The notes under the pieces are model-generated. The model ran no database searches. It saw only the letters and a program-made list of their open reading frames with translations, and was not told the origin of the DNA. DNA of 64,000 nucleotides from Marsupella aquatica (Eukaryota > Plantae > Marchantiophyta): positions 7,675,079 through 7,739,078 of the forward strand of contig OZ316898.1 of the NCBI GenBank assembly GCA_973895155.1, given 5' to 3'. Shown here piece after piece: positions 18,971 to 39,524 of the stretch. The position numbers and the translations under genes are program-made. Numbering within the stretch: position 1 is the first letter of the stretch; every line of letters begins with the position of its first letter.

Positions 18971-21391
18971 TCTGTGCATTGCACGGAGCAAGGAGGGCCG
19001 GTCCATAGGGAGTCAGGCCGAGTCATTTATAGGGTTCCCATTTCTTTCATTGATGGTCAGGGAAAATAGCAAATCAAATCTAATGAATGTGGATCTTTCC
19101 CGCCCAGGAGCTTTTATGTATTATGATGAAGAACAAGAAAAGGCTGAATTCCTTATTATAGTTGTACTAGATAATAATATATAACAAGAAGTCTCAAACA
19201 TTTCTCACTTTGTTCCACATTCCACTCACTTATTTCTTCTAAGTTGCCAGTATGCTCCACAATTTCAAGGAAATTAAATTGTTTCTAGTGAAATCTATTT
19301 ACTAGGGTAACCCGTAGCTCCTGAAGGGGCGGTTGTGATTTAAGAGGATGATTTATCTTTTTTTGCCTTGAAACCATAGCTGACCCATCCAAAGAGAGTA
19401 TTGTGGTTAAACTGACACGGTTCACCAGGTTAGACGAGGACAAATAGAATAGAGCACTTTTCTACTTTCTTGAACACATTCTTTAATTGGTTAATTTTAG
19501 TAGCCTGGATCCACCAGGTATGGCTTGGAGTACATTGATTTCTTGGTTTATTTTAGTAACCTGGATCCACCAGGTTTGGCTTCAAGGTCAGTGGCTCTTT
19601 GAAATCACACCTACCTATATAAAAGCCCCATTCCCTGGCACTTCCTCTTTATATCTGTCCTGTGGTGAAGTAAACATTGCCTCAGCATAAAAGGTTGAGC
19701 ACTAGCTCACCACTCTGGCCAGTAATCACACATCAAAATGTGGTAATATAGGGTGCATATTCACTAATTTGACAAAAATATTGAGGTTTATCATGGTATA
19801 CACTGATGTAGTACACCATAAATCTCATATTTTGATGTGGAATTACCGGGGCCCACTCACCACACTACTCCTCATCTCTGTGATGTGGTGAAGTGAACTA
19901 GTCTCACCTATTCCTGAACCTATGCAATTTATAATGAGAGGCACAAAGAACCCCTGCCTAGCTCGTTATATGTGCAGTTGTGGACTATTTATCTTTTTGC
20001 CTTGACACCAAAGCTGACCCATCCAAGAGAGGATAGACTGTCAACTCCTGAGCACACCCTTAATATGTAGGGTCCCCCCCTAGGGTAGCCACCCATCCAA
20101 GAGAGGATGGTAGTTAAGAGGACGATATATTTTGTTTGCCCTGAAACCTAAAGTTGACTCATCCAAGTGAGGATAGACAATCAACTCGGGAGCATGCGCC
20201 TCTGTAGGGTAGCCACAAGGGGGTCATAACAAGGGGGTCATACCAAGGGATCCAACAGGGACCCAGACCAAGAGGGAGAGAGGATGAACAAGAGCCCCAA
20301 AACAGACCAGCCAGGGGCTGAGGAGAAACCATGCAGGACTGACTCCCACCACTACACCCCCCCCCCCCCACACACGCACACGCATACCCTCCACAGCCCT
20401 TGCATGTCGCTGCAAACATTGCCTGTTGTGATTGTGGGACAAATCTAACCTGGCACAACCATACGCCATGAATATTGGAATGCACTTTTTGTGGGGCTAT
20501 GTGACTAAAATGAGTGACAACGTGTATATTTCCACAAAAATATGGCAACTTAGTAAATCTCGCTTTCTTCTTTGCCCTCTAAGCCAATGTGTTCATCGCC
20601 CCTTGTTCCTTTTTGGGTTTCTTTTCAGCCACTTTTGGTGGCAATTGTTTTACCAAAATCCACCTTCAACAGAGGCTCTCTTATTTTTTGCCAAATTTTA
20701 TCAAGATTTTTCAGTTCCTGTGAGCTAGTCCCCCGTGAAACAAAATGCCTTGACTATCAGATTATTAAGTTTATTATCCTTGCATGGGGTGAGCTTAGGT
20801 GAAGTTGTTGCTTGAATGGACCACACTGTTTGACCTGAAGGCTCCAATGGACAAACTATTCAATATACAATTGTTATTATTATCATCATTATTATTCTTA
20901 AGTTCAATTTGTAACTGAATTAAAGTTGACAGCCATGATTTATTAAAAGTGGCCAGGCACAAGGGGTTTTGGTTTTGTCTGCAACCCTACCGTCTGTAGT
21001 GAACTTAAGAATAACCCTAAACCACCATCCATATATTCTTCATATGTCGTAATTAATATGAATAAAAGAATCTATTTTAATTTGTTCTCATATGACAAGT
21101 TCCTTCAAACCGATCATGGACAAACAAGGGCCTAACCAAAGCAGAAGGTCCCATGCTAGAGCCCCACAACACCGCTCTAGCATGGGAACAGCAAGTCCAT
21201 ATGTAAATTGTGACCTAGGCAGCAAGCCATCTGATATTCAATATCACATGATACATACCATGGTAACAGTACTATCGTCCTCCCAACACAACAATGAGGA
21301 TGGGTCATTTTGGCCCTTTTTCCATAAGACAGTGCCAAAAAAATGTAAATATTTTTGAGTTTTATGCAAAACTAGCCTGATGCATGTGCAC

Positions 21392-22771: not shown

Positions 22772-23827
22772 CTACCTCTTTGGCGATTGGCAGAGGATAT
22801 CATTCTTTGATGATCCACAACCCATCATGAAGCTGGGCACTTTCTTGGTGATTGATTTTGATCTTACAGGATGTGGTACATTAAGTTTCGGATGGGGGGG
22901 AGCATTCACAATCCAACTACATTGAAGAAGCTCCTTTGCACTAGGGCGGCATTGTGCATCAAAGGCTAAGCAGCTTTCAACAAATTCTTGACATGCTTGA
23001 GAGCAGTTGGGTGGCACATCTACCGAAAGGAGACTCCCTAACTCTGGGTCACCTTCATTGGTTTCAAGTCCAAATAGACTTGGCTCTTCCTCAGGGGGTT
23101 TGCCTGTTAACATCTCGACTATACAACAACCCAATGAGTAGATATCTGACATCTCATCTTGTTGGGCCATACTTATCACCTCGGGTGCGGAATACTCTGG
23201 GGTCCCAGTCACAAAAATCCTCCGTCTTCTTTTACTGTCTCCGGGCCTAGGATCCAAAACAAGGTCTCCTTCCTCCATAATCTTGGAAGAGCCAAAATCA
23301 CAAATTTTAATATTGTTATCCCCGACAAGGAAGTTTGCACACTTGAGGTCTCCGTGTACTATCCCTCTATTATGTAAATGGTATAGTCCCATAAGCACAT
23401 CTCTAGTGTATGCAGCTACAATGGGCTCCTCTAAGCTTCCTCCATTTCGATGTGTCTGCTCAAGTACATTGCCTCCCGGCACATACTCCATGAAAACATC
23501 AAATGTAGTTGTCATGTCAGTTGCCCTTGCAGCTTTAGTTATGGCATAACCCAAGTAACCAACAATAAATGGTGAATTGCTTTCGCTGAGTACTCTCTTC
23601 TCTTTTGATAAAGCCAACCTCTGTTCCACTTCTTTTGTGTTCACGCTCTTTACAGCAAACTTCTCTCCAGTGTCGTTGTCTATGGCTAGGTATACCTTTC
23701 CAAAAGATCCATCACCTATTAGCTTACTCCGAGTCCAATGTTTAATTGTAGTAGAAAATATTTCACTATTCTCACCAGCTTGACTGATATTTTTTACCGG
23801 CATTTTCCCTGTATGGTCTACTACCAT
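22772..23827 (-). CDS. Ser/Thr protein kinase, MAP3K (STE11/MEKK)-like, intronless, non-RD
   Basis: WTRSKLIGDGSFGKVYLA, FAVKS, FMEYVPGG, HGDLKCANFLV, DFG, GTPEYSAPE, SDIYSLGC, RPSAKELL. Confidence 0.92.
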   Translation of the reverse strand: MVVDHTGKMPVKNISQAGENSEIFSTTIKHWTRSKLIGDGSFGKVYLAIDNDTGEKFAVKSVNTKEVEQRLALSKEKRVLSESNSPFIVGYLGYAITKAARATDMTTTFDVFMEYVPGGNVLEQTHRNGGSLEEPIVAAYTRDVLMGLYHLHNRGIVHGDLKCANFLVGDNNIKICDFGSSKIMEEGDLVLDPRPGDSKRRRRIFVTGTPEYSAPEVISMAQQDEMSDIYSLGCCIVEMLTGKPPEEEPSLFGLETNEGDPELGSLLSVDVPPNCSQACQEFVESCLAFDAQCRPSAKELLQCSWIVNAPPHPKLNVPHPVRSKSITKKVPSFMMGCGSSKNDILCQSPKR

Positions 23828-26166: not shown

Positions 26167-27153
26167 TTAGCGCCGTTTGTTCAAATTCACTCCACAACCC
26201 AACAAATTTGAGAAGGAGAACTTCGATTTGGGTTTACGAGAAGATGCTTCAAGCTGGCGTGGATAAGGAGGAGCATTGACAATCCAAGAATGCCGCAAGA
26301 GGACGGCAGCTGAAGGGCGGTGTTCTGGGTCCAGAGCAAAGCACCGATCCACAAATTCTCGGCAGCGTTTCGAGTACGTGGGTGGGATGTCCACCGTACA
26401 TTGTGAGAGTGCAGGATTTCCATCTGCGTCTCTCTCGTTCACATCAGGGTCTTCATATGCATAGATTGCAGGTGGGTCTTCTGGTGGGTTTCCAGTACAC
26501 ATCTCCACAATGCTACACCCTAGAGAGTATATATCGGAAGGAGTGTCCTGCTGAGCCTGATCCACCACCTCAGGTGCCATATATCCCACAGTCCCGGTGA
26601 CAAAAATCTGATTGCGATGGGCTCTTGAATATTCAGGACTAGTGGGCGGGATGCGGTAATTTTTACTCAAAAACTTTGCTGAGCCAAAGTCACAAAGCTT
26701 GATGTTCTCAGATCCGACGAGAAAGTTAGCACATTTTATGTCACCATGGACGATCCCAAGATTGTGTATGTATTTCAGTCCGTGCAAAACATCACGAGTA
26801 TACGCAGCTACCAAGTTCTCACTCAAGCCTCCTTCATTGCGATCGAGTTGCTCCCTAACCGAGCCCTTTGGCACTAACTCGATGAAAAGATCAAGTAATT
26901 CTGTATTGGAGTCTTTCCTTTTGGTTGCTGCGCATCCCAAATATTGCACAACGTACTTTGAGTTACATTCTGATAAAGCATTTTTCTCGATGGCGAGTGC
27001 CATTCGCTTTTCCTTGTCATCCTTATGGACAGATTTTACAGCAAAGAGCTTCATGTTTTCCTGGTTGATCGCTATGTAGACTGTTGCATATGTTCCTTTT
27101 CCTATTTCCTCTCCCCGAATCCATTCCTTGATGGGGAAGGGTATTGGAGGCAT
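26167..27153 (-). CDS. Ser/Thr protein kinase, MAP3K-like, intronless tandem paralog, non-RD
   Basis: WIRGEEIGKGTYATVY, FAVKS, HGDIKCANFLV, DFG, GTVGYMAPE, SDIYSLGC, RPSAAVLLRHSW. Collinear with the 22772-23827 kinase. Confidence 0.93.
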   Translation of the reverse strand: MPPIPFPIKEWIRGEEIGKGTYATVYIAINQENMKLFAVKSVHKDDKEKRMALAIEKNALSECNSKYVVQYLGCAATKRKDSNTELLDLFIELVPKGSVREQLDRNEGGLSENLVAAYTRDVLHGLKYIHNLGIVHGDIKCANFLVGSENIKLCDFGSAKFLSKNYRIPPTSPEYSRAHRNQIFVTGTVGYMAPEVVDQAQQDTPSDIYSLGCSIVEMCTGNPPEDPPAIYAYEDPDVNERDADGNPALSQCTVDIPPTYSKRCREFVDRCFALDPEHRPSAAVLLRHSWIVNAPPYPRQLEASSRKPKSKFSFSNLLGCGVNLNKRR

Positions 27154-30456: not shown

Positions 30457-32130
30457 ATGACATCATTTTTTGCCCTTGATGGTGACCAAGATTCAAAACC
30501 TGCATCCATTGATGGCACTGAATATGAGTCTACATCAGAATCTTCCGCAGGGCCAGACGATGAAAAAGAGCAGGCAAAGGAGGACATGCTGAAGTCAGAG
30601 CAAAAGCTGTCCCCTGTTATAACAACAAATGCAGCGGGTAAACCAAAGGCCAAAGTAAAAAAGAAATCATGGTGGTGGCAGAGATCATGGAGTAAGAAGT
30701 CCAAGAAGAAAAAGCACAAGAAAAAGAAGCACAAGAAGCACAAGAAGAAGAAGAAGAAGAAGCACAAAAAGAAGAGAAGTGGGAAACGAAAGGGGAAATC
30801 AACAGTGTCAATGCATAGACATCACCATGCAACATTTTCTCATCTCACTCATGATGCTCTCCTGCGCCTCAAGTGCTCCCCCGTTCACCGTGTGGGATAC
30901 ACCCATGTGCAGATTGTGAAGAACATAGAAAAACATTACAGGTTGAAACTAGGGAAAAAGTTCAAAGTTAGATTACAATTAAGTTTGGAAAAGCTTGTGA
31001 GAAAAGGCTTGCTTGTCCCTACCGGAATCAAGGACAAGTACAAACCAAGTGAAGCATTTCTGGCACAGTTTTCCCGTCTCAAGGTCGTTGATGGAGCTTC
31101 AAACCGCCACTTTGGACTGCTAATCCACAAATATAAAAGTAGGAGGGACAAAAGTCGTGGAAGTAGGAGTAGAAGTAGGAGACGGTCTCACAGGAGGAGG
31201 AGGAGGAGGAGAAGGGGGAGGAGGAGGAGAAGGAGAAGGAGAAGGAAGAGAAGGAAGGGGAAGAAGAAGAAACACCCACGTCAATTTCACCATCGTCACC
31301 AGTCAAAAAGGCAGTTGGACAGCAGTACTAACAGCCATACAAGCAAGAAGGCAGAGTCAAAGAAGGGATCAAGCAGCACCAATACAATTTTTGGGGAAAG
31401 TATAACAAAGTGGCTTTGGCCCTCTAAGGAAGACAACACTAAACAAGAGAAAAATGTAAAATCCAAGGCCCTCAATGAAGATGAGAAAAACCATTATAGC
31501 AAGCAATCATGGGTAAATAAATTCAAGCGCATGCCCCGGGGCATGCTTGTGTCTCAGAAGAGGAAAGCTGCACCTGGTAGACATTTAGTAAGTCGCCCAA
31601 AGGGAGCAAGATATCGTAGATTTAATCGGCTTCGGATCCGTGAGCGTGTAGAGAAACCTGTATTTTCCACTCCAGAGGGATCTATCCACTGGTCAGATGC
31701 ACTTTCTCGCTTAACATCAAAAGCTTCTGACAATTCTCATTATGAAACACCTCCCACTTCAATGTCTCCTAGTGATGAGGATGAGTACATGAGTGACACT
31801 ACATCAAAAAGTAGCAAGCCCAAAGATAAGTCTAGAAAAGAGCATGACATATTGCATGCTATGAAGGAGAGCAGCAAAGGTTATGCAAGCCGCAGGAGTT
31901 TTTTGCAGAGGGTTAGCGATACCCTTCGTGGTGCTTTTGGAACCACACGCGTGAGCACCACAACTTGTGAAGGAGGCCCCTCTAGGCCTCAGAAGTTTTC
32001 CAAGACCCCTCCTAAATCTAAAAGGCCGCTCAAGACCAGACCTAAATCTTCAGGACCCTTGGCACGACCTACAGAAGACCCTGGAAGATCTTGTGGCAAT
32101 TCAATGGTTGCTAATCCCAATATACAATGA
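30457..32130 (+). CDS. Histone H1-related protamine-like basic protein (Lys/His tract, H15 winged helix, Arg-rich segment), 557 aa, intronless
   Basis: HATFSHLTHDALLRL...IVKNIEKHY.LKLGKKFKVRLQLSLEKLVRKGLL matches the linker-histone globular domain pattern (~30826-31062), followed by SRSRSRRRSHR8GR9KRRK. Confidence 0.82.
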   Translation: MTSFFALDGDQDSKPASIDGTEYESTSESSAGPDDEKEQAKEDMLKSEQKLSPVITTNAAGKPKAKVKKKSWWWQRSWSKKSKKKKHKKKKHKKHKKKKKKKHKKKRSGKRKGKSTVSMHRHHHATFSHLTHDALLRLKCSPVHRVGYTHVQIVKNIEKHYRLKLGKKFKVRLQLSLEKLVRKGLLVPTGIKDKYKPSEAFLAQFSRLKVVDGASNRHFGLLIHKYKSRRDKSRGSRSRSRRRSHRRRRRRRRGRRRRRRRRRKRRKGKKKKHPRQFHHRHQSKRQLDSSTNSHTSKKAESKKGSSSTNTIFGESITKWLWPSKEDNTKQEKNVKSKALNEDEKNHYSKQSWVNKFKRMPRGMLVSQKRKAAPGRHLVSRPKGARYRRFNRLRIRERVEKPVFSTPEGSIHWSDALSRLTSKASDNSHYETPPTSMSPSDEDEYMSDTTSKSSKPKDKSRKEHDILHAMKESSKGYASRRSFLQRVSDTLRGAFGTTRVSTTTCEGGPSRPQKFSKTPPKSKRPLKTRPKSSGPLARPTEDPGRSCGNSMVANPNIQ

Positions 32131-33871
32131 TGGACAAGATTCTGTCCAAGAGAATGATTCTACTTTACCTCTACCCCAAAGGCTTGCAATTTTTTTACAA
32201 GAGTGATTACTTATTCTTAGCACTAGGTTTACTTATTTTGAGAACACTTTTGTATCAAGTATCCATTGTTTACTTGCTGTATTTGAAGAGCTTGGTATAC
32301 ACAACACATGCATCATTTGCCAATACTTGTACCCATGGCTTTCAAGTCTGTCATTTCTCTCAATGATGGAGTATGTGAACACCTTGACCGAGTAGCTATA
32401 TGTAGTTTGGAGTTCTGAGAAAGCATATTTAGAGCTTAGACACATGGTCACTGAGATGTTCCAATGTAACTAAGGCCTGAGAAAGCAACAGCTTGGTTTC
32501 TCTGCAATTACTTACATTGGCCTAAGTTACATTGGCCTTTGGATTTGTAAAATCACCACTATTCAAATAAAGATGTATCGTTTTGTATAACTTGTCTTGG
32601 ACATGTCTAAATTTTTGACAATCGTCAAAAATCATAGCAAAACTCAAATATTAATATTTCACTGTTTCTTTACTTGTAAGTGTTACTATGTAGTCCTGGC
32701 TAACACAATAGCAGCTAGTCAGGGATGCTGCCACTTTCGAGACATTTATTTAACTTTGTAGTCCTCTTGGTGCAAAGAGTCAAGGGATTGTATTGATAGA
32801 GGTTGTAAGAGGTTGTACTTTATTCTAATTACAGTATTTCTGGTAAAGGTGTATTAGTGTAGATGTATTACAAACTGACTGTCACATTAACTGGATCAGA
32901 GTTTTAGTGGTCTATGAGTATGTCATACTTATATTGTAGTGGAGACCACTTGGAGTATTTCTACACTATAATACTACAATCAGGGCTTCAGCTCACAATA
33001 CTAACGACACCATGGTAACTGGCATCATGTCAAACCTATATGTCCATCCCGCTTCAGCTTCTTACTAGTATTGTGTTGTAGAGTAGTCTTCTCAGTGTCA
33101 TTCTCCATGGATTTGAAACACTTGTAGTCTCACTTGAAGTTATTGTTTCCGCTTTTCATGGTGTGATTACTTTTGGGTTAAGTGAGTTTCTTAATTATAG
33201 AACACTAGCCCAAAGCCTGTATGTTTTACCATTGTAGTTGTGGTCAAGTTGTTGTTGGTGTGGCAATTGGGTGGCAATACCCATGCATTGCGCATAAATG
33301 TTGAGGTGAGTGCAAGTGAGGGAAGGAAGTGTTGTTGTTCAAAGTGTTATTGTTCCACTGTATCGTTTGTGCAATCATGTTGTGGTTGAAAAAGTAGGCT
33401 GTTTTTTGGGTGGGTGGTTGTTGCTGGGGATACGTTGTCCTTTTAGGGTGACTTTACAAGACTTTGAGGGCACTTGTGAGCTTTTTTCACCAAAGCAAGA
33501 GGGCCATTTCACACACTAAATATAGAGCTCAGGGGCTTAAAGTGTTTTTGGACTCCTTGGAAGTGAAGCAAGTGATGCTAGAGTAATTTGCTAAAAGACA
33601 CTAGAGTAATTTGCTGAAAGACAGGTTGGGGACCCACTCCACCTGAATATCATGTTATTCTTTGGATGGAGTCTTTCTAGCTCTGACAAGAGTAGACCTG
33701 GCTTATGAAAGACTTGCGGGGTCCACATCTAGTGCAAATGACTCAAACAATGAATAGACCAAAGGGCCAGAAGAAGGAACCTCCAAGAGAGGTGGTTTCA
33801 AATCTGGGACAGAATTGTGCTCCAGGAAAGCAAAAATTGGGCCCCACTCCATTCCATGTAGGATCCGCAAC

Positions 33872-34217
33872 AGGTTAGGTTGAAAAAGGCCCCCAACATT
33901 TTGTAAAGTGACCAGCAGCAACAGCTGCTCCCCAATGGATGGCCCACATCCCATCTTGGAGTTTTAAAAAAAGTGGAAACTCCAAGTCTTGTAAAGCCAC
34001 CCTTAGTTGATGTTGTTGAAAGGAAAGTGATGCCATAAGCTTCTCTTTAGGTTAGGTTAGGTTGAAAAAGGCCCCCAACATTTTGTAAAGTGACCAGCAG
34101 CAACAGCTGCTCCCCAATGGATGGCCCACATCCCATCTTGGAGTTTTAAAAAAAGTGGAAACTCCAAGTCTTGTAAAGCCACCCTTAGTTGATGTTGTTG
34201 AAAGGAAAGTGATGCCA
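33872..34217. repeat. Recent tandem duplication, 182-bp period
   Basis: About 164 bp apparently identical, starting AGGTTAGGTTGAAAAAGGCCCC at 33872 and 34054. Confidence 0.92.
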
Positions 34218-36234
34218 ACGTACTTCTCTTTCTCTACTTGCTTCATTCCAAAAACAATACTTGATGTACTGGCCTGTAGTATAGCCAACACATCTACCTT
34301 GCACTTGACTGTAAAAGCAAGTAAGTGGCTCTGTGCCCTTACTGTAAAACATTATGTACTGGCCTATATTATAGCTAACACATGTACCTTAGTATAAAGG
34401 CACGTGCCATATATTTCCTTGGCACTCACTTTCGTCAATCAAGGACACGTACATTACTGTAAAAGCAAGTGCCATATAGCTCATTGAGCACTCCTTTGAG
34501 GAAATCCAAGAATGTAGAAAAATATTGGAAAACCTCTAACCAGACTTTGTTCCCTCCTTTTTCAAAGTTTTTAAACAGACTGTGGGAGCAATTCGGGTGA
34601 GCTCCCTTATTACAAAGTGGTTGATATACTGACATTAGTGTCCCAATAATTGCACATCAGTTTTGGTGGGCTCCCTTATTAGAGTGGTTTATATATGACC
34701 CCCTTATAGACTAGTCCCACTAATTGCACATCAAAATGAGGCAGCATACTGTGTCATGTGACATGTAAACACAGGCTCAAGGGAATTCAATATCATGATA
34801 AATAAATTATTCTGTTAAAAATCATCGGGTGTTACACAGCTGGCTGTCGGTTTGTGATGTGCAATTACCAGGATGCCAGATGGACCAGGGCCTTGCATGA
34901 ACCCGTATAGAAACGGACTAGTGACCAGCAAACACAAAACCTGTAAGGCATGTGAATTAAAGCCATTGTAGCTGGTCATACAAAGGTGGGTGCAGCTGGT
35001 CTTTGAGCGAGTCAGACATTTGGGGAACATGGGTCTTTCTCAAAGTCCCACCCTCACCACCCAAAGCTAACAAGTTTTGAACACGCAAGCACAACCAGAA
35101 GCTGAAGTCACCAACATGGACAGCTGTGACAAGAACATTCTTGGAAAGGAGTTTGGGGGTTTAACAGCAAGGGGTCCAAGGGCAATTGGGGGCGGAGAGG
35201 TGCAGATTTTGGGGACTAGGGAGAAATACAGGGGCATGGTTTTGGGGAATGAAAAGGGGGGAGGGGTCTCATTGGATGCTCAATCGTACGAGTGAGAATA
35301 ATCCTTTGTGCTCTAAACACGTACTGGTTGCTTTTCAAACCACCTTGCATCTTTTACTTTAGTTGGCGCACTAACCATAGGGTGTAAGCTTGTAATTGGC
35401 TACTTGGCATGCATGGAAAGGCACCTAGCAAAGTGAAACGACACATTGACTTATCTCTCAATATTTCGTTTCATGCATGCCGATGCATCAACAATGGGGG
35501 GGGGATCCTTCTACAATGGAACCCATAACAATAAATATTAAATTTATGTTCCAGGCGTAGAGCAAATGAAACAAACTTAAGACCTCCATATCCAATCTTT
35601 GACCCTCAAGAGTGGAATATCGTGTCCCACTTATTGCCGGGGACCTTGCAGACATGCAACTAATTGGAATGGAATGGCAAAAAACCTGAAGGGATTATTT
35701 GTCAAGAGGTATGGTCAGCATAGAAAGCTGCTTCAAGTCCTTCAATATTCTGAATACTTATATAATTTATACTCCTCATAAAGGCAGCCTTGACTAGAGG
35801 TAAAAACTGTTGGAGTTATGTGAAGCCATGAATTGAGAATATGGTTGTGACCTAGCAAATTGTCCCTATAATTGCAACGCTCACTACAGTCGTTGATCTT
35901 GTTAGTCCTTGAGAAATTTAGATCATAAAAAATTGTAACCTTGCTTTTGAGAGAAATTACAAAAATCCTTAGTTTTCTGAATAGCAAACTCCCTAGCAAT
36001 GGCATTGCATGCATGGCCATCTGGGGTGGGGGGGGAGGGGGGGCGGGGGGGATTTGTCTTGAGGCTTCTTACATTTCATCAATCAATTCAATTCATAAAT
36101 TCTTATTATGGAACATTTGTGGCCATGGTGATTGACCCTCCACAGGTTCAAGTATCAAAATTCTAGTGTATGTTTTTGAGAGGTCATGCTCACTCACACC
36201 CAGATAGCAAGGGTGAAAAGGGGCCTTGGTGAAA

Positions 36235-37542
36235 ATGCCAACAAAGTTGGAAACCATGTCCTACTTGAAGTACATGGGCTTTGCACGAGGCTCAAAGAAA
36301 AAGCATCAGCAAACAACCTCAGGAAAACATAAAAACAAATCCTACATGAAATACTTGGGCTTGGCACGAGGCTCAAAGAAAAAGCATCGGCATAGAGCGG
36401 AAGGAAAACATGGAAAGGCAAGGAGGAAAATGAAGTCCACACCAAAGATGCGAACACATCGCCATGCAACGTTTGCACATCTCATTCATGATGCAATTCT
36501 TTGTCTCAACTGTGCACCCTTCCCATACTATCGTGGCTCTAGCAAGAGGGCCATATTTAGAAATATTGAGACACACTACAAGATTAGGTTGGGGAAGAAG
36601 TTTGACATTAGGTTGAAACTTACTCTGGCAAAGTTGGTGAGACAAGGCAAACTCATCCCTCTTGGACAGAATAGTATCAGATACATACTCAGCCCAAAAT
36701 TTTCAGAGCACTTTAAAAGACTAAAGGTTATCAATGGTGGTGCAAATAGACGTTTTGGCATAGGAATCAGAGAACGAAGGAGAAGCCATAGCCACAGTCA
36801 TAGGAGCAGATCTCCACACCACAGGTCTAGGTCCCTGCACCGGAAGTCTAGATCTCGGTCTAGGTCTCGGCATAAAAGGTCAAGATCTAGGTCGACATCC
36901 ACCCAGAGATCAGAAGCAAGAAAGTCTGGGCTTACTAATTTGGAAAGTTGGTTTGGTAGTGCAAGTGGGTCTCGTAGTGGATCCAAATCTGAGGCTGGTA
37001 GTGAATTCTGTAAAGAATGTGGATCCAAGGTTGGTAGTGAAACTTCAAAGTCAAAGTCTGTCAATGAAAGTTGGTTTGGTTTGGGAAGTGGTTCTGATAA
37101 TGAATCCAATTCCAAGGAAGAGAGTGTACCCAGACGCGAGAGAAAGAATGAGGATACTGGAGCAGGAACTAGTTCAAGCTATACCAGTAATAGTGGCAGG
37201 TTCAGAGAATGGTTATGGCCAAGACCAGTTGCAAGTGAGGATGGAACGGTAGATAAAAAATCCCAACAGATTGAGAAACAAGGACTGGAACAAGGAGGTT
37301 ATAGGAGATCCAAGATGGCAATGTCACCCAAGAAGCCATTGAGTAGAAGTCAAAGTCATCCAAGCTCTAGAGGATGGTCAATTGAACACCAAAATCTTGC
37401 AAGCCCTAGATCTCAAACCTTGGGTTTGGGGAAAAAATTGAAGCAAAATGTGTTGAAGAGATATAAGCGGGGCGGGATCCAGAATAACATATTAAGTCGA
37501 AGCCTGAGTAGAAGTCCAAGTTTCCAACGTGCTAGAGGATAG
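36235..37542 (+). CDS. Histone H1-related protamine-like basic protein, paralog (H15 domain plus RS/His-rich segment), intronless
   Basis: HATFAHLIHDAILCL...RGSSKRAIFRNIETHY...LKLTLAKLVRQGKLI retains the H1 GSS..AI signature, followed by RRRSHSHSHRSRSPHHRSRSLHRKSRSRSRSR. First ATG at 36235. Confidence 0.85.
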   Translation: MPTKLETMSYLKYMGFARGSKKKHQQTTSGKHKNKSYMKYLGLARGSKKKHRHRAEGKHGKARRKMKSTPKMRTHRHATFAHLIHDAILCLNCAPFPYYRGSSKRAIFRNIETHYKIRLGKKFDIRLKLTLAKLVRQGKLIPLGQNSIRYILSPKFSEHFKRLKVINGGANRRFGIGIRERRRSHSHSHRSRSPHHRSRSLHRKSRSRSRSRHKRSRSRSTSTQRSEARKSGLTNLESWFGSASGSRSGSKSEAGSEFCKECGSKVGSETSKSKSVNESWFGLGSGSDNESNSKEESVPRRERKNEDTGAGTSSSYTSNSGRFREWLWPRPVASEDGTVDKKSQQIEKQGLEQGGYRRSKMAMSPKKPLSRSQSHPSSRGWSIEHQNLASPRSQTLGLGKKLKQNVLKRYKRGGIQNNILSRSLSRSPSFQRARG

Positions 37543-39524
37543 TCAAATGAACAATAAAATCTTACATGCCCCAGGGCAGCAGTTAATCTCAAAGCCTGGG
37601 TCTAAGGTAAGGATTGGGGCAAATGTTGAGGAGATCATTTTAGAATGGCCAGGGAGTCCCCTGAAAACATCAGGAGAATGAATATGGGTAAACCTCCACA
37701 ACCAGGCACTACTCTAAACAGTCTGACTGGTAAACACCTCGAGCCATGACTGCTACCGAGAATGATCAACTTTTTGACCCACTTTGAGATCCAAACTTCA
37801 CATTCAATAGTGAATGGTTCTGGGTCTGAATTTCCAGTTGGATTAAATTAAATTCTACTCTTGCATTCAATCTGCTAGAATCCTGCCGGCAATTCTATTT
37901 GTTCATTTCTATTACTACAGGGGCAGAACTATATTTAAGGGAAGAAGGACCGGGAAAATCCAACATCCCATTAGTTGATTTGAGACACGCTAGAGGCAAT
38001 GTGGGTTGCAAATCTGACCTGTTGAATCTCTCCTAGCATATGAAGAATTGTTGTGCATCACAGAACATCTTTTGGCTTGTCTAGAGAAATACACAAGTAC
38101 TGCAGCTACGGTAGCAGTAGCCATTTTTGCTCATGAGATATTTTGTAAAAAGGCAATTGACAAGAAATGTCATGAATCATGCCTGAGAGTTCATTTCTTG
38201 AACCCGGAGGGATAATCATGAAAGATGATATGTTTGTTTGAATCATACTTTGGATCATGCAATTGAGTATCAGTTGTAATCTAATTTGCATCCATTGATG
38301 AATGTTACAATCTGGTGAGTACGTACCAGAAATAGGATTTCCAAAATTTCCAATCTCAAACTGGTGCATTTAATCATGGCGACAAGCTTCAAATACTTTC
38401 AGTTGAAATATAATAAAAATTTCAAGAATAGTGAGATTGAAATGTAGTTAACATGACACAATGAGCCTTAAAATATACCATTTCGTGATCCAAACTCTCT
38501 CAAAGTTTACTTAGATTTAAAATTACATGCACCTTTATCTCTACTGTAATTTCTTAGTCAGATGCTTGCCTTACTGGACGTAGAACGTAACTCAACCAAG
38601 AACATCCTCCAAGCTGTGCTTCTAAATGTTGCCACAAAATTTTGTTGTCTTCTTGGCAAAATTTCAACTTACTAATTTTAAAGTTGATTTTAGTGAAACC
38701 CACCAGAATACTCAAAACTTTGTTGAACAATGATTTCTTTCAGCCAGGGAGCTGATGGTTGGCTTAGGTAATCATACTCACGTCCCAAAGAGACCTCTTT
38801 TCCCTGTCCTGCATTTTTTCTTTGTTATCTCATGTGCGCATGAATGGTTTTTGTTTCATTTCCATGAAAGCAATGATTCCATTTAATTAAGGGGGGGGCG
38901 GTTGGCTGCTCTTGATTGTAGAAGACTTCTGAAGGCAGTTGGACACGTGGTTAGACATAATGGATATTTTTAGTTGTGTCAACTTGGAGAGAGACACAAC
39001 TTGTACTTGTAATTAGATCATACAACTTTGTAGTAGACTAATCTATTCAATTAAAGGCAGGATTAAAATGCCTTTAAACCAGTCATGTGATAAGACCGAC
39101 AACATTTCACAGTGAACTCTTCTACAAGGGGAAATCTTTAAAAAAATCCTCTTGCCTCTTTCTGGACTTTTTGAAGTTGTGAGGGACTCTTTGGCTTGTT
39201 GGGCCTTGTTGCTCCTCTCCGGGTGTAGTCCTGTTTTCTCTCTTTATTAGGTCTGTTTCCCTATGAGATCATGTCTCCAGGTTTGGAGGTTCTGTCCTTT
39301 TGGCAGTTTGTGATATATGTCCTTAAAATCTTTTGGCAGTGTGATATATATCCTTTCAAATATGTATTCTTTCAAAACATGTGTGTCCCTGGCAGGGAAA
39401 GTTGTATCATGAACAGTTCAAAACAAAAACTGCATCGTGATTAGTCCAAACCAAAAACTGAAGCATGTTCCAGGATGAACATGCTATTACTAAAACTAAA
39501 AACATCGGAAAGTATGTCAACTAC

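Follow-up and report, generated by a model that had tools for sequence, protein, structure and literature searches.

The window, a 64,000-nucleotide stretch of Marsupella aquatica contig OZ316898.1, carries two intronless open reading frames in tandem on its forward strand: gene 1 (30457..32130, 557 aa), which encodes a long-form H1-like protein of the family here called type B, and gene 2 (36235..37542, 435 aa from its ATG). Both proteins are very basic, mostly disordered and built round a linker-histone (H1) DNA-binding domain. The two ORFs were present as given in the preliminary description of this DNA, with one correction: gene 2 truly starts with the ATG at 36235, which lies 9 bases into the ORF as listed, and not with the TTG at 36226. 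The claim that the two are paralogues was borne out, gene 1 and gene 2 sharing 46% identity over 158 aa (E 3e-34). A transposon origin or multi-copy status was ruled out because contig depth at the genes equalled that of the flanks. The read contigs of four public runs, examined over 6000 bases (31543-37542), cover intergenic DNA as well as the genes, which indicates that these runs behave as DNA. A search for RNA runs containing this stretch found none.

Domains, basic blocks and tails of the two proteins

Each ORF encodes one H1/H5-type winged helix, on which the AF2 models, Foldseek and a family profile searched against the PDB agree. Together with a conserved, family-specific extension of about 30 aa, the domain spans aa 114-225 of gene 1 (30796..31131, + strand; profile, AF2 model and structure alignment) and aa 67-180 of gene 2 (36433..36774, + strand; Pfam, AF2, Foldseek and profile), and the intervals at which a winged helix had first been proposed (30826-31062 and 36463-36703) fall within these two domains. 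Gene 2 matched PF00538 with 26.7 bits (cut-off 22.4), gene 1 gave no match to this model at E ≤ 1, and the gene 1 orthologues scored 19.7-20.1 bits. All 12 matches of a 5-sequence family profile in the PDB were H1.0/H5 chains (best E 2e-5). The AF2 model of the gene 2 domain displayed an H-H-H-strand-strand topology, and nine of its ten best Foldseek matches were H5/H1.0 chains, eight of them with target-normalised TM scores of 0.69-0.79 at 25-30% identity; linker histones again dominated the ranks below the top ten. In the full-length AF2 model of gene 1, the folded part was confined to residues 127-209, with the rest predicted to be disordered. Alignment of this model to H5 by VIA-align gave Z 9.0, rmsd 2.0 and 26% identity, and many other winged helices tied with H5 on Z, but at 6-18% identity. 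Structure prediction, which had been proposed as a check, thus returned a three-helix winged-helix fold with a beta hairpin for both domains, and the fold and profile matches support H1 descent of the pair.

The composition of the flanking regions largely followed the preliminary description. Gene 1 begins with an acidic segment (aa 1-60, net charge -9; 30457..30636, + strand), which is kept in its Calypogeia orthologue, and a Lys/His tract precedes the winged helix in both ORFs (in gene 1 aa 61-113, 57% Lys; 30637..30795, + strand). Directly after the winged helix lies an Arg-type block, which is Arg-rich in gene 1 (aa 226-275, 56% Arg; 31132..31281, + strand), matched in position by a longer poly-Arg block in the Calypogeia orthologue, and Arg/Ser/His-rich in gene 2 (aa 181-232, with 33% Arg, 33% Ser and 13.5% His; 36775..36930, + strand), where it is conserved in kind in the Calypogeia orthologue. 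The suggestion that the pair yields two chemically different protamines stood in part: the difference is old, being kept in the Calypogeia orthologues, but the gene 2 block is only one third Arg, a weak fit to a protamine.

The usual Lys/Ala/Pro-rich H1 tail is indeed absent from both proteins, whose tails are Ser-rich with 3-4% Ala and 4-7% Pro (4% and 7%, respectively, in gene 1). As judged from the alignment and AF2 model, gene 1 ends in a disordered Ser/Lys-rich tail (31282..32127, + strand) with the short conserved motifs W-x-W-P, basic R-Y and E-H-D-x-L-H; aligned with its orthologue, the disordered Ser-rich tail of gene 2 (36931..37539, + strand) contains the motifs S-W-F-G and W-L-W-P, together with a unit that occurs once in this tail and as a repeat in Calypogeia. 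A Pfam search of both tails found nothing, and an Atlas search with the gene 1 tail gave no usable match. The conserved motifs indicate that the tail is more than discarded spacer, and such conservation would argue against a simple throw-away pro-piece.

The type B family, its gene cluster and its promoters

By sequence comparison, the pair are long-form members of a small, liverwort-restricted and unnamed H1 branch, for which we use the name type B. Among 1.84 billion representative proteins, 16 reached E ≤ 1e-3, five of which were true family members (two from Calypogeia fissa), the next-best matches being for the most part H1s with an Arg tail from Sphagnum, Calypogeia and Riccia. In the reverse direction, gene 2 was recovered (34.7 bits) by a profile built from the canonical Arg-tailed H1s, and a search that started from the Riccia canonical protein retrieved Riccia and Calypogeia proteins only. 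Calypogeia P0002 is the orthologue of gene 1 (43% identity across 582 aligned columns by tblastn, E 4e-101; 51% identity across the N-terminal 255 columns by BLASTP) and its sister in the tree with support 99/91, and the Calypogeia orthologue of gene 2 is an unannotated 686-aa ORF (L001:19354-21414). In this tree, where the canonical Arg-tailed H1s (type A) comprise Calypogeia and Riccia genes (P0008, P0015), type B (88/97) stood apart from type A (99/97), at 34-44% domain identity between the types, and orthology of the pair with the Arg-tailed H1 clade of Calypogeia and Riccia was not borne out. The winged helix shares 64-72% identity between the window genes and their Calypogeia orthologues, and that of the canonical type 84% between Calypogeia and Riccia fluitans, another species pair, which makes the comparison only indicative. 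Short family members (197-292 aa, Riccia included) consist of the winged helix and an Arg/Ser tail alone; the form first described as oversized is therefore a later elaboration of a protamine-like H1. In every member that reaches past the winged helix, the Arg/Ser/His-rich block begins at the domain end.

In Calypogeia, the orthologues of both genes are clustered with a third paralogue and two canonical genes for an H1 globular domain with poly-Arg, in the order canonical H1-polyArg (-), type B (+), gene 1 orthologue (+), canonical H1-polyArg (-), gene 2 orthologue (+). On a second liverwort-like contig, a canonical H1-polyArg gene accompanies a gene-1-like gene. No canonical protamine-type H1 was found in the 64-kb window; the canonical gene that lies between the two orthologues in Calypogeia is missing here, with the flanking non-coding blocks still in order. 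Two G-R-P motifs resembling AT-hooks occur in the gene-1-like protein of L002.

Upstream of gene 2, comparison with Calypogeia revealed conservation in two non-coding blocks (35272-35301 and 35407-35490, within 35272..35490; 82% identity over 88 bases), and the orthologue comparison a conserved proximal promoter block at about -145 to -75 (36090..36160). K-mer sharing among nine promoters returned just short, weakly supported motifs besides this gene 2 orthologue block. The Marchantia protamine gene MpPRM depends on MpDUO1, and the DUO1 motif is RRCSGTT (PMC6290024). All three canonical H1-polyArg genes have two copies of this motif within 450 bases (background rate 0.44-0.7 per kb); upstream of the window genes it occurred only at -1218 of gene 1 and not at all for gene 2, in what is a weak test.

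Sperm chromatin and competing explanations

In Marchantia, sperm chromatin consists of protamines whose release by cleavage of H1s specific to the male germ line has been reported (D'Ippolito 2019, cited in PMC13251019 and PMC9402228), and protamines often arise through cleavage of larger winged-helix precursors (PMC13251019). On the evidence of the genes, type B shares its layout with protamine-like sperm proteins and with liverwort H1 plus poly-Arg genes, the basic block being placed exactly where protamine-type H1s bear their poly-Arg tail. Because related species have true protamine-type H1 genes next to this family, a function in sperm DNA packing is plausible, if unproven. The most likely job, to which we give about an even chance, would be the condensation of spermatid chromatin, by protamine-like proteins or by precursors that release the block. 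The winged helix should bind DNA or nucleosomes, flanked by strongly basic disordered regions; the basic block would be released from the precursor by a presumed cleavage, or the uncleaved protamine-like protein would itself act; Ser phosphorylation may tune the gene 2 block, and Trp/Phe motifs in the tail may aid self-association, with a presumed phase behaviour. The initial proposal of sperm protamine precursors thus gains from H1 descent, the position of the block, the old chemical difference between the paralogues, the conserved acidic N-terminus of gene 1 and the clustering of the orthologues. It loses from the separate clade, the lack of DUO1-motif enrichment, the low Arg share of the gene 2 block, the conserved tail, the absence of a canonical protamine-type H1 from the window, the lost C-terminal ends and the stop at codon 18 of gene 2 in a related sample.

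A more elaborate version, which we consider rather doubtful, sees in the long type B proteins sperm chromatin precursors that are made of several parts and confined to leafy liverworts. Two cuts would free a protamine module from the interior of the protein, with poly-Arg in gene 1 and Arg/Ser/His under phosphorylation control in gene 2; charge would be masked by the acidic N-terminus, and the conserved tail with its Trp/Phe motifs would drive or control phase separation of the condensing spermatid chromatin; as part of the same tentative scheme, the poly-Arg and Arg/Ser/His chemistries would have been apart since before the Marsupella/Calypogeia split.

The pair may instead be nuclear proteins of an H1-variant or Arg/Ser-domain kind whose job lies outside sperm, for instance in general chromatin architecture or RNA-linked nuclear bodies, their closeness to protamine-type H1 genes reflecting tandem-duplication descent only, a reading that we regard as somewhat unlikely. 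It would accommodate the separation of the type B clade from the canonical protamine-type H1s, the long conserved tail with its own motifs, a gene 2 block more like an Arg/Ser domain than a protamine, the unenriched DUO1 motif and the two G-R-P motifs of the L002 protein, but it sits poorly with a basic block that in every member occupies precisely the position of the protamine tail, with short members that are plain protamine-like H1s, with cluster linkage in two other genomes, and with a winged helix that diverges faster than the canonical type (only indicatively, given the differing species pairs).

Both window genes end earlier than their orthologues, with the C-terminal end lost, and it is conceivable, although improbable in our view, that they are decaying copies, heading to pseudogenes, from a sperm-protein cluster which relatives retain intact. 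Beyond the stop of gene 1, the orthologue comparison identified a relic of the ancestral C-terminus in the +1 frame (32131..32206, + strand), so that its conserved terminal L-Q-E motif is out of frame; no indel was reported there in the four public runs, with contigs across the relic in at least X1 and X2. An intron restoring this frame was set aside because the orthologues are colinear single ORFs and the sole GT..AG pair noticed by eye spans about 32 bases. The stop of gene 2 falls inside a repeat, and beyond it comparison with Calypogeia uncovered the tail repeat a second time (37543..37652, + strand), in decayed form and interrupted by stop codons and a frame change. A related sample (run X4) has a nonsense change that places a stop at codon 18 of gene 2. 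Decay would also agree with the missing canonical H1-polyArg gene between blocks that kept their order. Against it, ORFs of 557 and 435 aa are still open through low-complexity sequence, synonymous changes prevail in gene 2 (9 synonymous and 5 missense differences in the related sample), the promoter blocks are conserved, and an in-frame Met at codon 38, ahead of the domain, could rescue the nonsense allele.

Relation to known H1-derived proteins

Collectively, the pair represents a real, unnamed variant of H1-derived protamine-like proteins. To our knowledge, Marchantia is the one plant whose sperm chromatin proteins are known in detail. The presence of another H1-derived family, with short and long forms, beside the canonical protamine-type genes in Calypogeia and on the second liverwort-like contig suggests that the H1-to-protamine route gave more than one bryophyte product. 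The type B genes are concrete candidates for the staging of chromatin condensation in motile plant sperm, and the apparent erosion of the cluster in Marsupella may bear on the evolution of sperm genes under relaxed constraint.

Outside the family, the closest sequence relatives are the liverwort protamine-type H1s (MpPRM and the male germ-specific H1 precursors, for which the type A genes P0008 and P0015 of Calypogeia and Riccia stand here), which resemble type B in having a winged helix followed by an Arg-rich block, in being intronless, and in being physically clustered with it in Calypogeia and on the second liverwort-like contig. Type B differs in forming its own clade (34-44% domain identity), in a conserved stretch of about 30 aa that follows the wing, in its basic N-terminal tract, in the Arg/Ser/His-rich rather than poly-Arg block of gene 2, and, for the long members, in a conserved tail of 200-400 aa after the basic block, which makes the block internal. 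With somatic linker histone H1 (PF00538) it shares the winged-helix fold and a tripartite organisation in which the ends are disordered, but type B is much longer and lacks the Lys/Ala/Pro-rich C-terminal tail, and gene 1 falls below the Pfam threshold. Reuse of the H1 globular domain in a new context is also seen in plant GH1-HMGA and GH1-Myb (SMH/TRB) proteins, whose AT-hook (G-R-P) motif and Myb domain (Pfam) were both absent from the window proteins. Among animals, protamine-like proteins of the PL-I type and winged-helix protamine precursors occur in surf clam, mussel and spider, some of these proteins being cut at several sites into small protamines, with Ser phosphorylation common (PMC13251019, PMC11607694). 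Type B is of independent plant origin and shares no sequence with these animal proteins beyond the H1 domain, but it resembles them in form, being large and basic, with one winged helix of the H1 type and extended disordered regions.

Two H1-like genes and their linker-histone domains

The window carries a copia-type element, protein kinases and an expansin-like ORF (copia-type gag/integrase and expansin-like ORFs at 85-1548 and 7889-8488, minus strand) and is therefore plant DNA; by sequence, the closest relatives found for genes 1 and 2 agree with a liverwort origin. Gene 1 (30457-32130, 557 aa) and gene 2 (36235-37542, 435 aa) are intronless ORFs lying 4.1 kb apart on the plus strand, and their proteins are 46% identical across 158 residues (E = 3e-34). 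The listed gene 2 ORF opens with a TTG (36226); since its orthologue in the leafy liverwort Calypogeia fissa begins at the position matching the ATG at 36235, we adopted the length of 435 aa. Upstream of gene 1 are two paralogous intronless protein-kinase ORFs (22772-23827 and 26167-27153, minus strand; Pkinase, E about 1e-54), and no kinase gene was seen in the Calypogeia loci examined; that these could be kinases of the Arg/Ser block is pure speculation.

Segment composition confirmed every item of the preliminary description of both ORFs. Gene 1 comprises an acidic N-terminus (aa 1-60, net charge -9), a tract of 57% Lys and 7.5% His (aa 61-113), the winged helix, a block of 56% Arg (aa 226-275) and a tail with 16% Ser, 12% Lys, 4% Ala and 7% Pro (aa 276-557). 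The corresponding segments of gene 2 contain 23% Lys and 7.6% His (aa 1-66), 33% Arg, 33% Ser and 13.5% His (aa 181-232), and 20% Ser (tail, aa 233-435).

The linker-histone winged helix proposed earlier for both ORFs was borne out by Pfam (for gene 2), a family profile, AF2/Foldseek and structural alignment. PF00538 matched gene 2 at 26.7 bits (threshold 22.4) and its orthologue at 29.1 bits, gave no match to gene 1, and scored 19.7-20.1 bits against the gene 1 orthologues. When a profile of five domains from type B, the H1-like family of the window, was compared with the PDB, 12 of 12 matches were H1.0/H5 chains (best E = 2e-5); this domain spans 114 profile positions vs 74 in Pfam, with a conserved extension beyond the wing. 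For the gene 2 domain, AF2 gave a model (pLDDT 70-88 across the core) with a helix-helix-helix-strand-strand topology and an additional helix. Of the top ten Foldseek matches to this model, nine were H5/H1.0 chains, the following ranks being mostly linker histones as well; eight of these H5/H1.0 matches showed target-normalised TM scores of 0.69-0.79 at 25-30% identity. In the full-length model of gene 1, only residues 127-209 were folded, and among 48,161 PDB representatives they matched winged helices generally (Z 8-9.4), with H5 and H1 chains by far the highest in identity (H5: Z 9.0, rmsd 2.0, 26% identity). Genes 1 and 2 very probably encode H1-derived chromatin proteins.

Type B relatives and their genomic neighborhood

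Word-based searches returned two related proteins, one of them from Calypogeia, and an exhaustive profile search of 1.84 billion representative proteins gave 16 matches at E<=1e-3, of which five (P0001-P0005) were clear type B members. The next-best matches were mostly Arg-tailed H1s, including Sphagnum P0006 and P0012, Calypogeia P0008, Riccia fluitans P0015 and Riccia sorocarpa P0009 (a 124-aa model). In the maximum-likelihood tree, type B formed one clade (88/97), with P0009 on a long branch within it and gene 1 paired with Calypogeia P0002 (99/91), while type A, consisting of genes with a canonical H1 globular domain and a poly-Arg tail, formed a second (99/97). Domain identity was 39-72% among type B members, 34-44% between type B and type A, and 84% between the type A domains of Calypogeia and Riccia fluitans; in the reverse direction, a type A profile retrieved gene 2 at 34.7 bits.

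In every member reaching beyond the winged helix, an Arg/Ser/His-rich block starts at the domain end. P0005, a 265-aa public model, reads through as a single 292-aa ORF with an Arg/Ser tail, and the Riccia sorocarpa P0009 locus (L005:8001-8594) as a single 197-aa ORF of winged helix and Arg/Ser tail. In its simplest form, a type B protein is an ordinary protamine-like H1, made up only of winged helix and Arg/Ser tail; genes 1 and 2 have added a long tail to this form. Disorder is predicted for these long tails, which had no match in Pfam or Atlas. W-P, basic R-Y and E-H-D-x-L-H motifs, with further invariant residues downstream, are common to the tails of the three gene 1 orthologues; in the gene 2 orthologues, the shared elements are S-W-F-G and W-L-W-P motifs together with a repeat unit.

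In Calypogeia, where the L003 and L001 pieces belong to one contig, the order is a type A gene (L003:8451-9146, minus), the 292-aa type B ORF ending right past its Arg/Ser block (L003:10001-10879, plus), the gene 1 orthologue (L001:10001-11812, plus), another type A gene (L001:16332-17066, minus) and the 686-aa, unannotated gene 2 orthologue (L001:19354-21414, plus). On L002, a 7-kb ENA contig, a 665-aa gene-1-like ORF is paired with a 345-aa type A gene. On our reading, the type B family arose within or next to the protamine-type H1 cluster. Public annotations miss or mis-splice the type B members at L001:19354-21414, L003:10001-10879 and L005:8001-8594. The gene-1-like protein at L002:1766-3763 has two AT-hook-like G-R-P motifs close to its N-terminus and a Ser-rich block at the site of the gene 1 poly-Arg.

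Upstream regions and divergence of the window locus

Marchantia MpPRM depends on DUO1 (PMC6290024). Two copies of the DUO1 consensus, RRCSGTT, were found within 450 bases upstream of each of the three type A genes (L001:17370-17416, L002:6514-6573 and L003:9544-9600), a pattern that fits DUO1 control of type A as reported for MpPRM. Gene 1 of the window has a sole copy, at -1218, and no copy lies upstream of gene 2. A promoter block near -115 is common to gene 2 and its orthologue, and the core of this block recurs upstream of one type A gene, at -231. Conserved non-coding blocks upstream of gene 2 (35272-35490 and 36090-36160), containing CATGCATG-type motifs, are 78-90% identical to L001:17542-17812 and 19213-19283, which in Calypogeia sit between a type A gene and the gene 2 orthologue. 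In two runs, contig depth was very high over G-rich simple sequence just 5' of gene 2 (35943-36142 and 35495), the length of which differed by five bases between samples.

No type A gene or remnant was found anywhere in the 64-kb window. Non-coding blocks that in Calypogeia flank the type A gene are retained in the same order (32366-32423, 35272-35301, 35407-35490 and 36090-36160), and the interval 32423-35272, the counterpart of the type A site, measures about 2.9 kb vs 5.5 kb in Calypogeia; on the simplest reading, type A was lost or relocated in the window lineage. This interval also contains a repeat (33743-33942) over which read depth is raised.

A rival reading holds that genes 1 and 2 are undergoing decay in the window species. 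Gene 1 stops about 25 codons early relative to its orthologues, and the C-terminal motif conserved in both of them sits at 32131-32206 in the +1 frame, a change that sums several upstream indels (vs the Calypogeia and L002 orthologues; region 32040-32206); the 3' flank is likewise still recognisable in its first bases. Across four public runs, which represent two coded organisms, no indel was reported in this region; it is spanned by contigs from X1 and X2 at least. The gene 2 stop falls within sequence that is a tandem repeat in Calypogeia, whose orthologue is about 250 aa longer, and the next copy of the tail repeat (37543-37652) has decayed, with stop codons and a shift of frame. In run X4 (coded organism B), 36286 C>T is a nonsense change at gene 2 codon 18, and an in-frame Met follows at codon 38, ahead of the winged helix; X4 differed from the window at nine synonymous and five missense sites in gene 2, rough counts from contigs of mixed depth.

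Possible role in sperm chromatin

The products of genes 1 and 2 are read as H1-derived, highly basic, largely disordered DNA binders. Judged by architecture and linkage, the preferred reading is that they help condense spermatid chromatin, either as protamine-like proteins or as precursors, and this role is about as likely as not; a second rival is a nuclear role outside the germline. Excision of a protamine from within these proteins, as the preliminary description had envisaged, seems rather unlikely. Marchantia sperm chromatin is protamine-based (PMC9402228), its protamines are reported as cleaved from male germ-specific H1s (D'Ippolito 2019), and larger winged-helix precursors often give rise to protamines through several cuts and phosphorylation (PMC13251019). 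A sperm-condensation role for genes 1 and 2 would fit the protamine sperm chromatin of Marchantia, its origin by H1 cleavage and the literature on winged-helix precursors.
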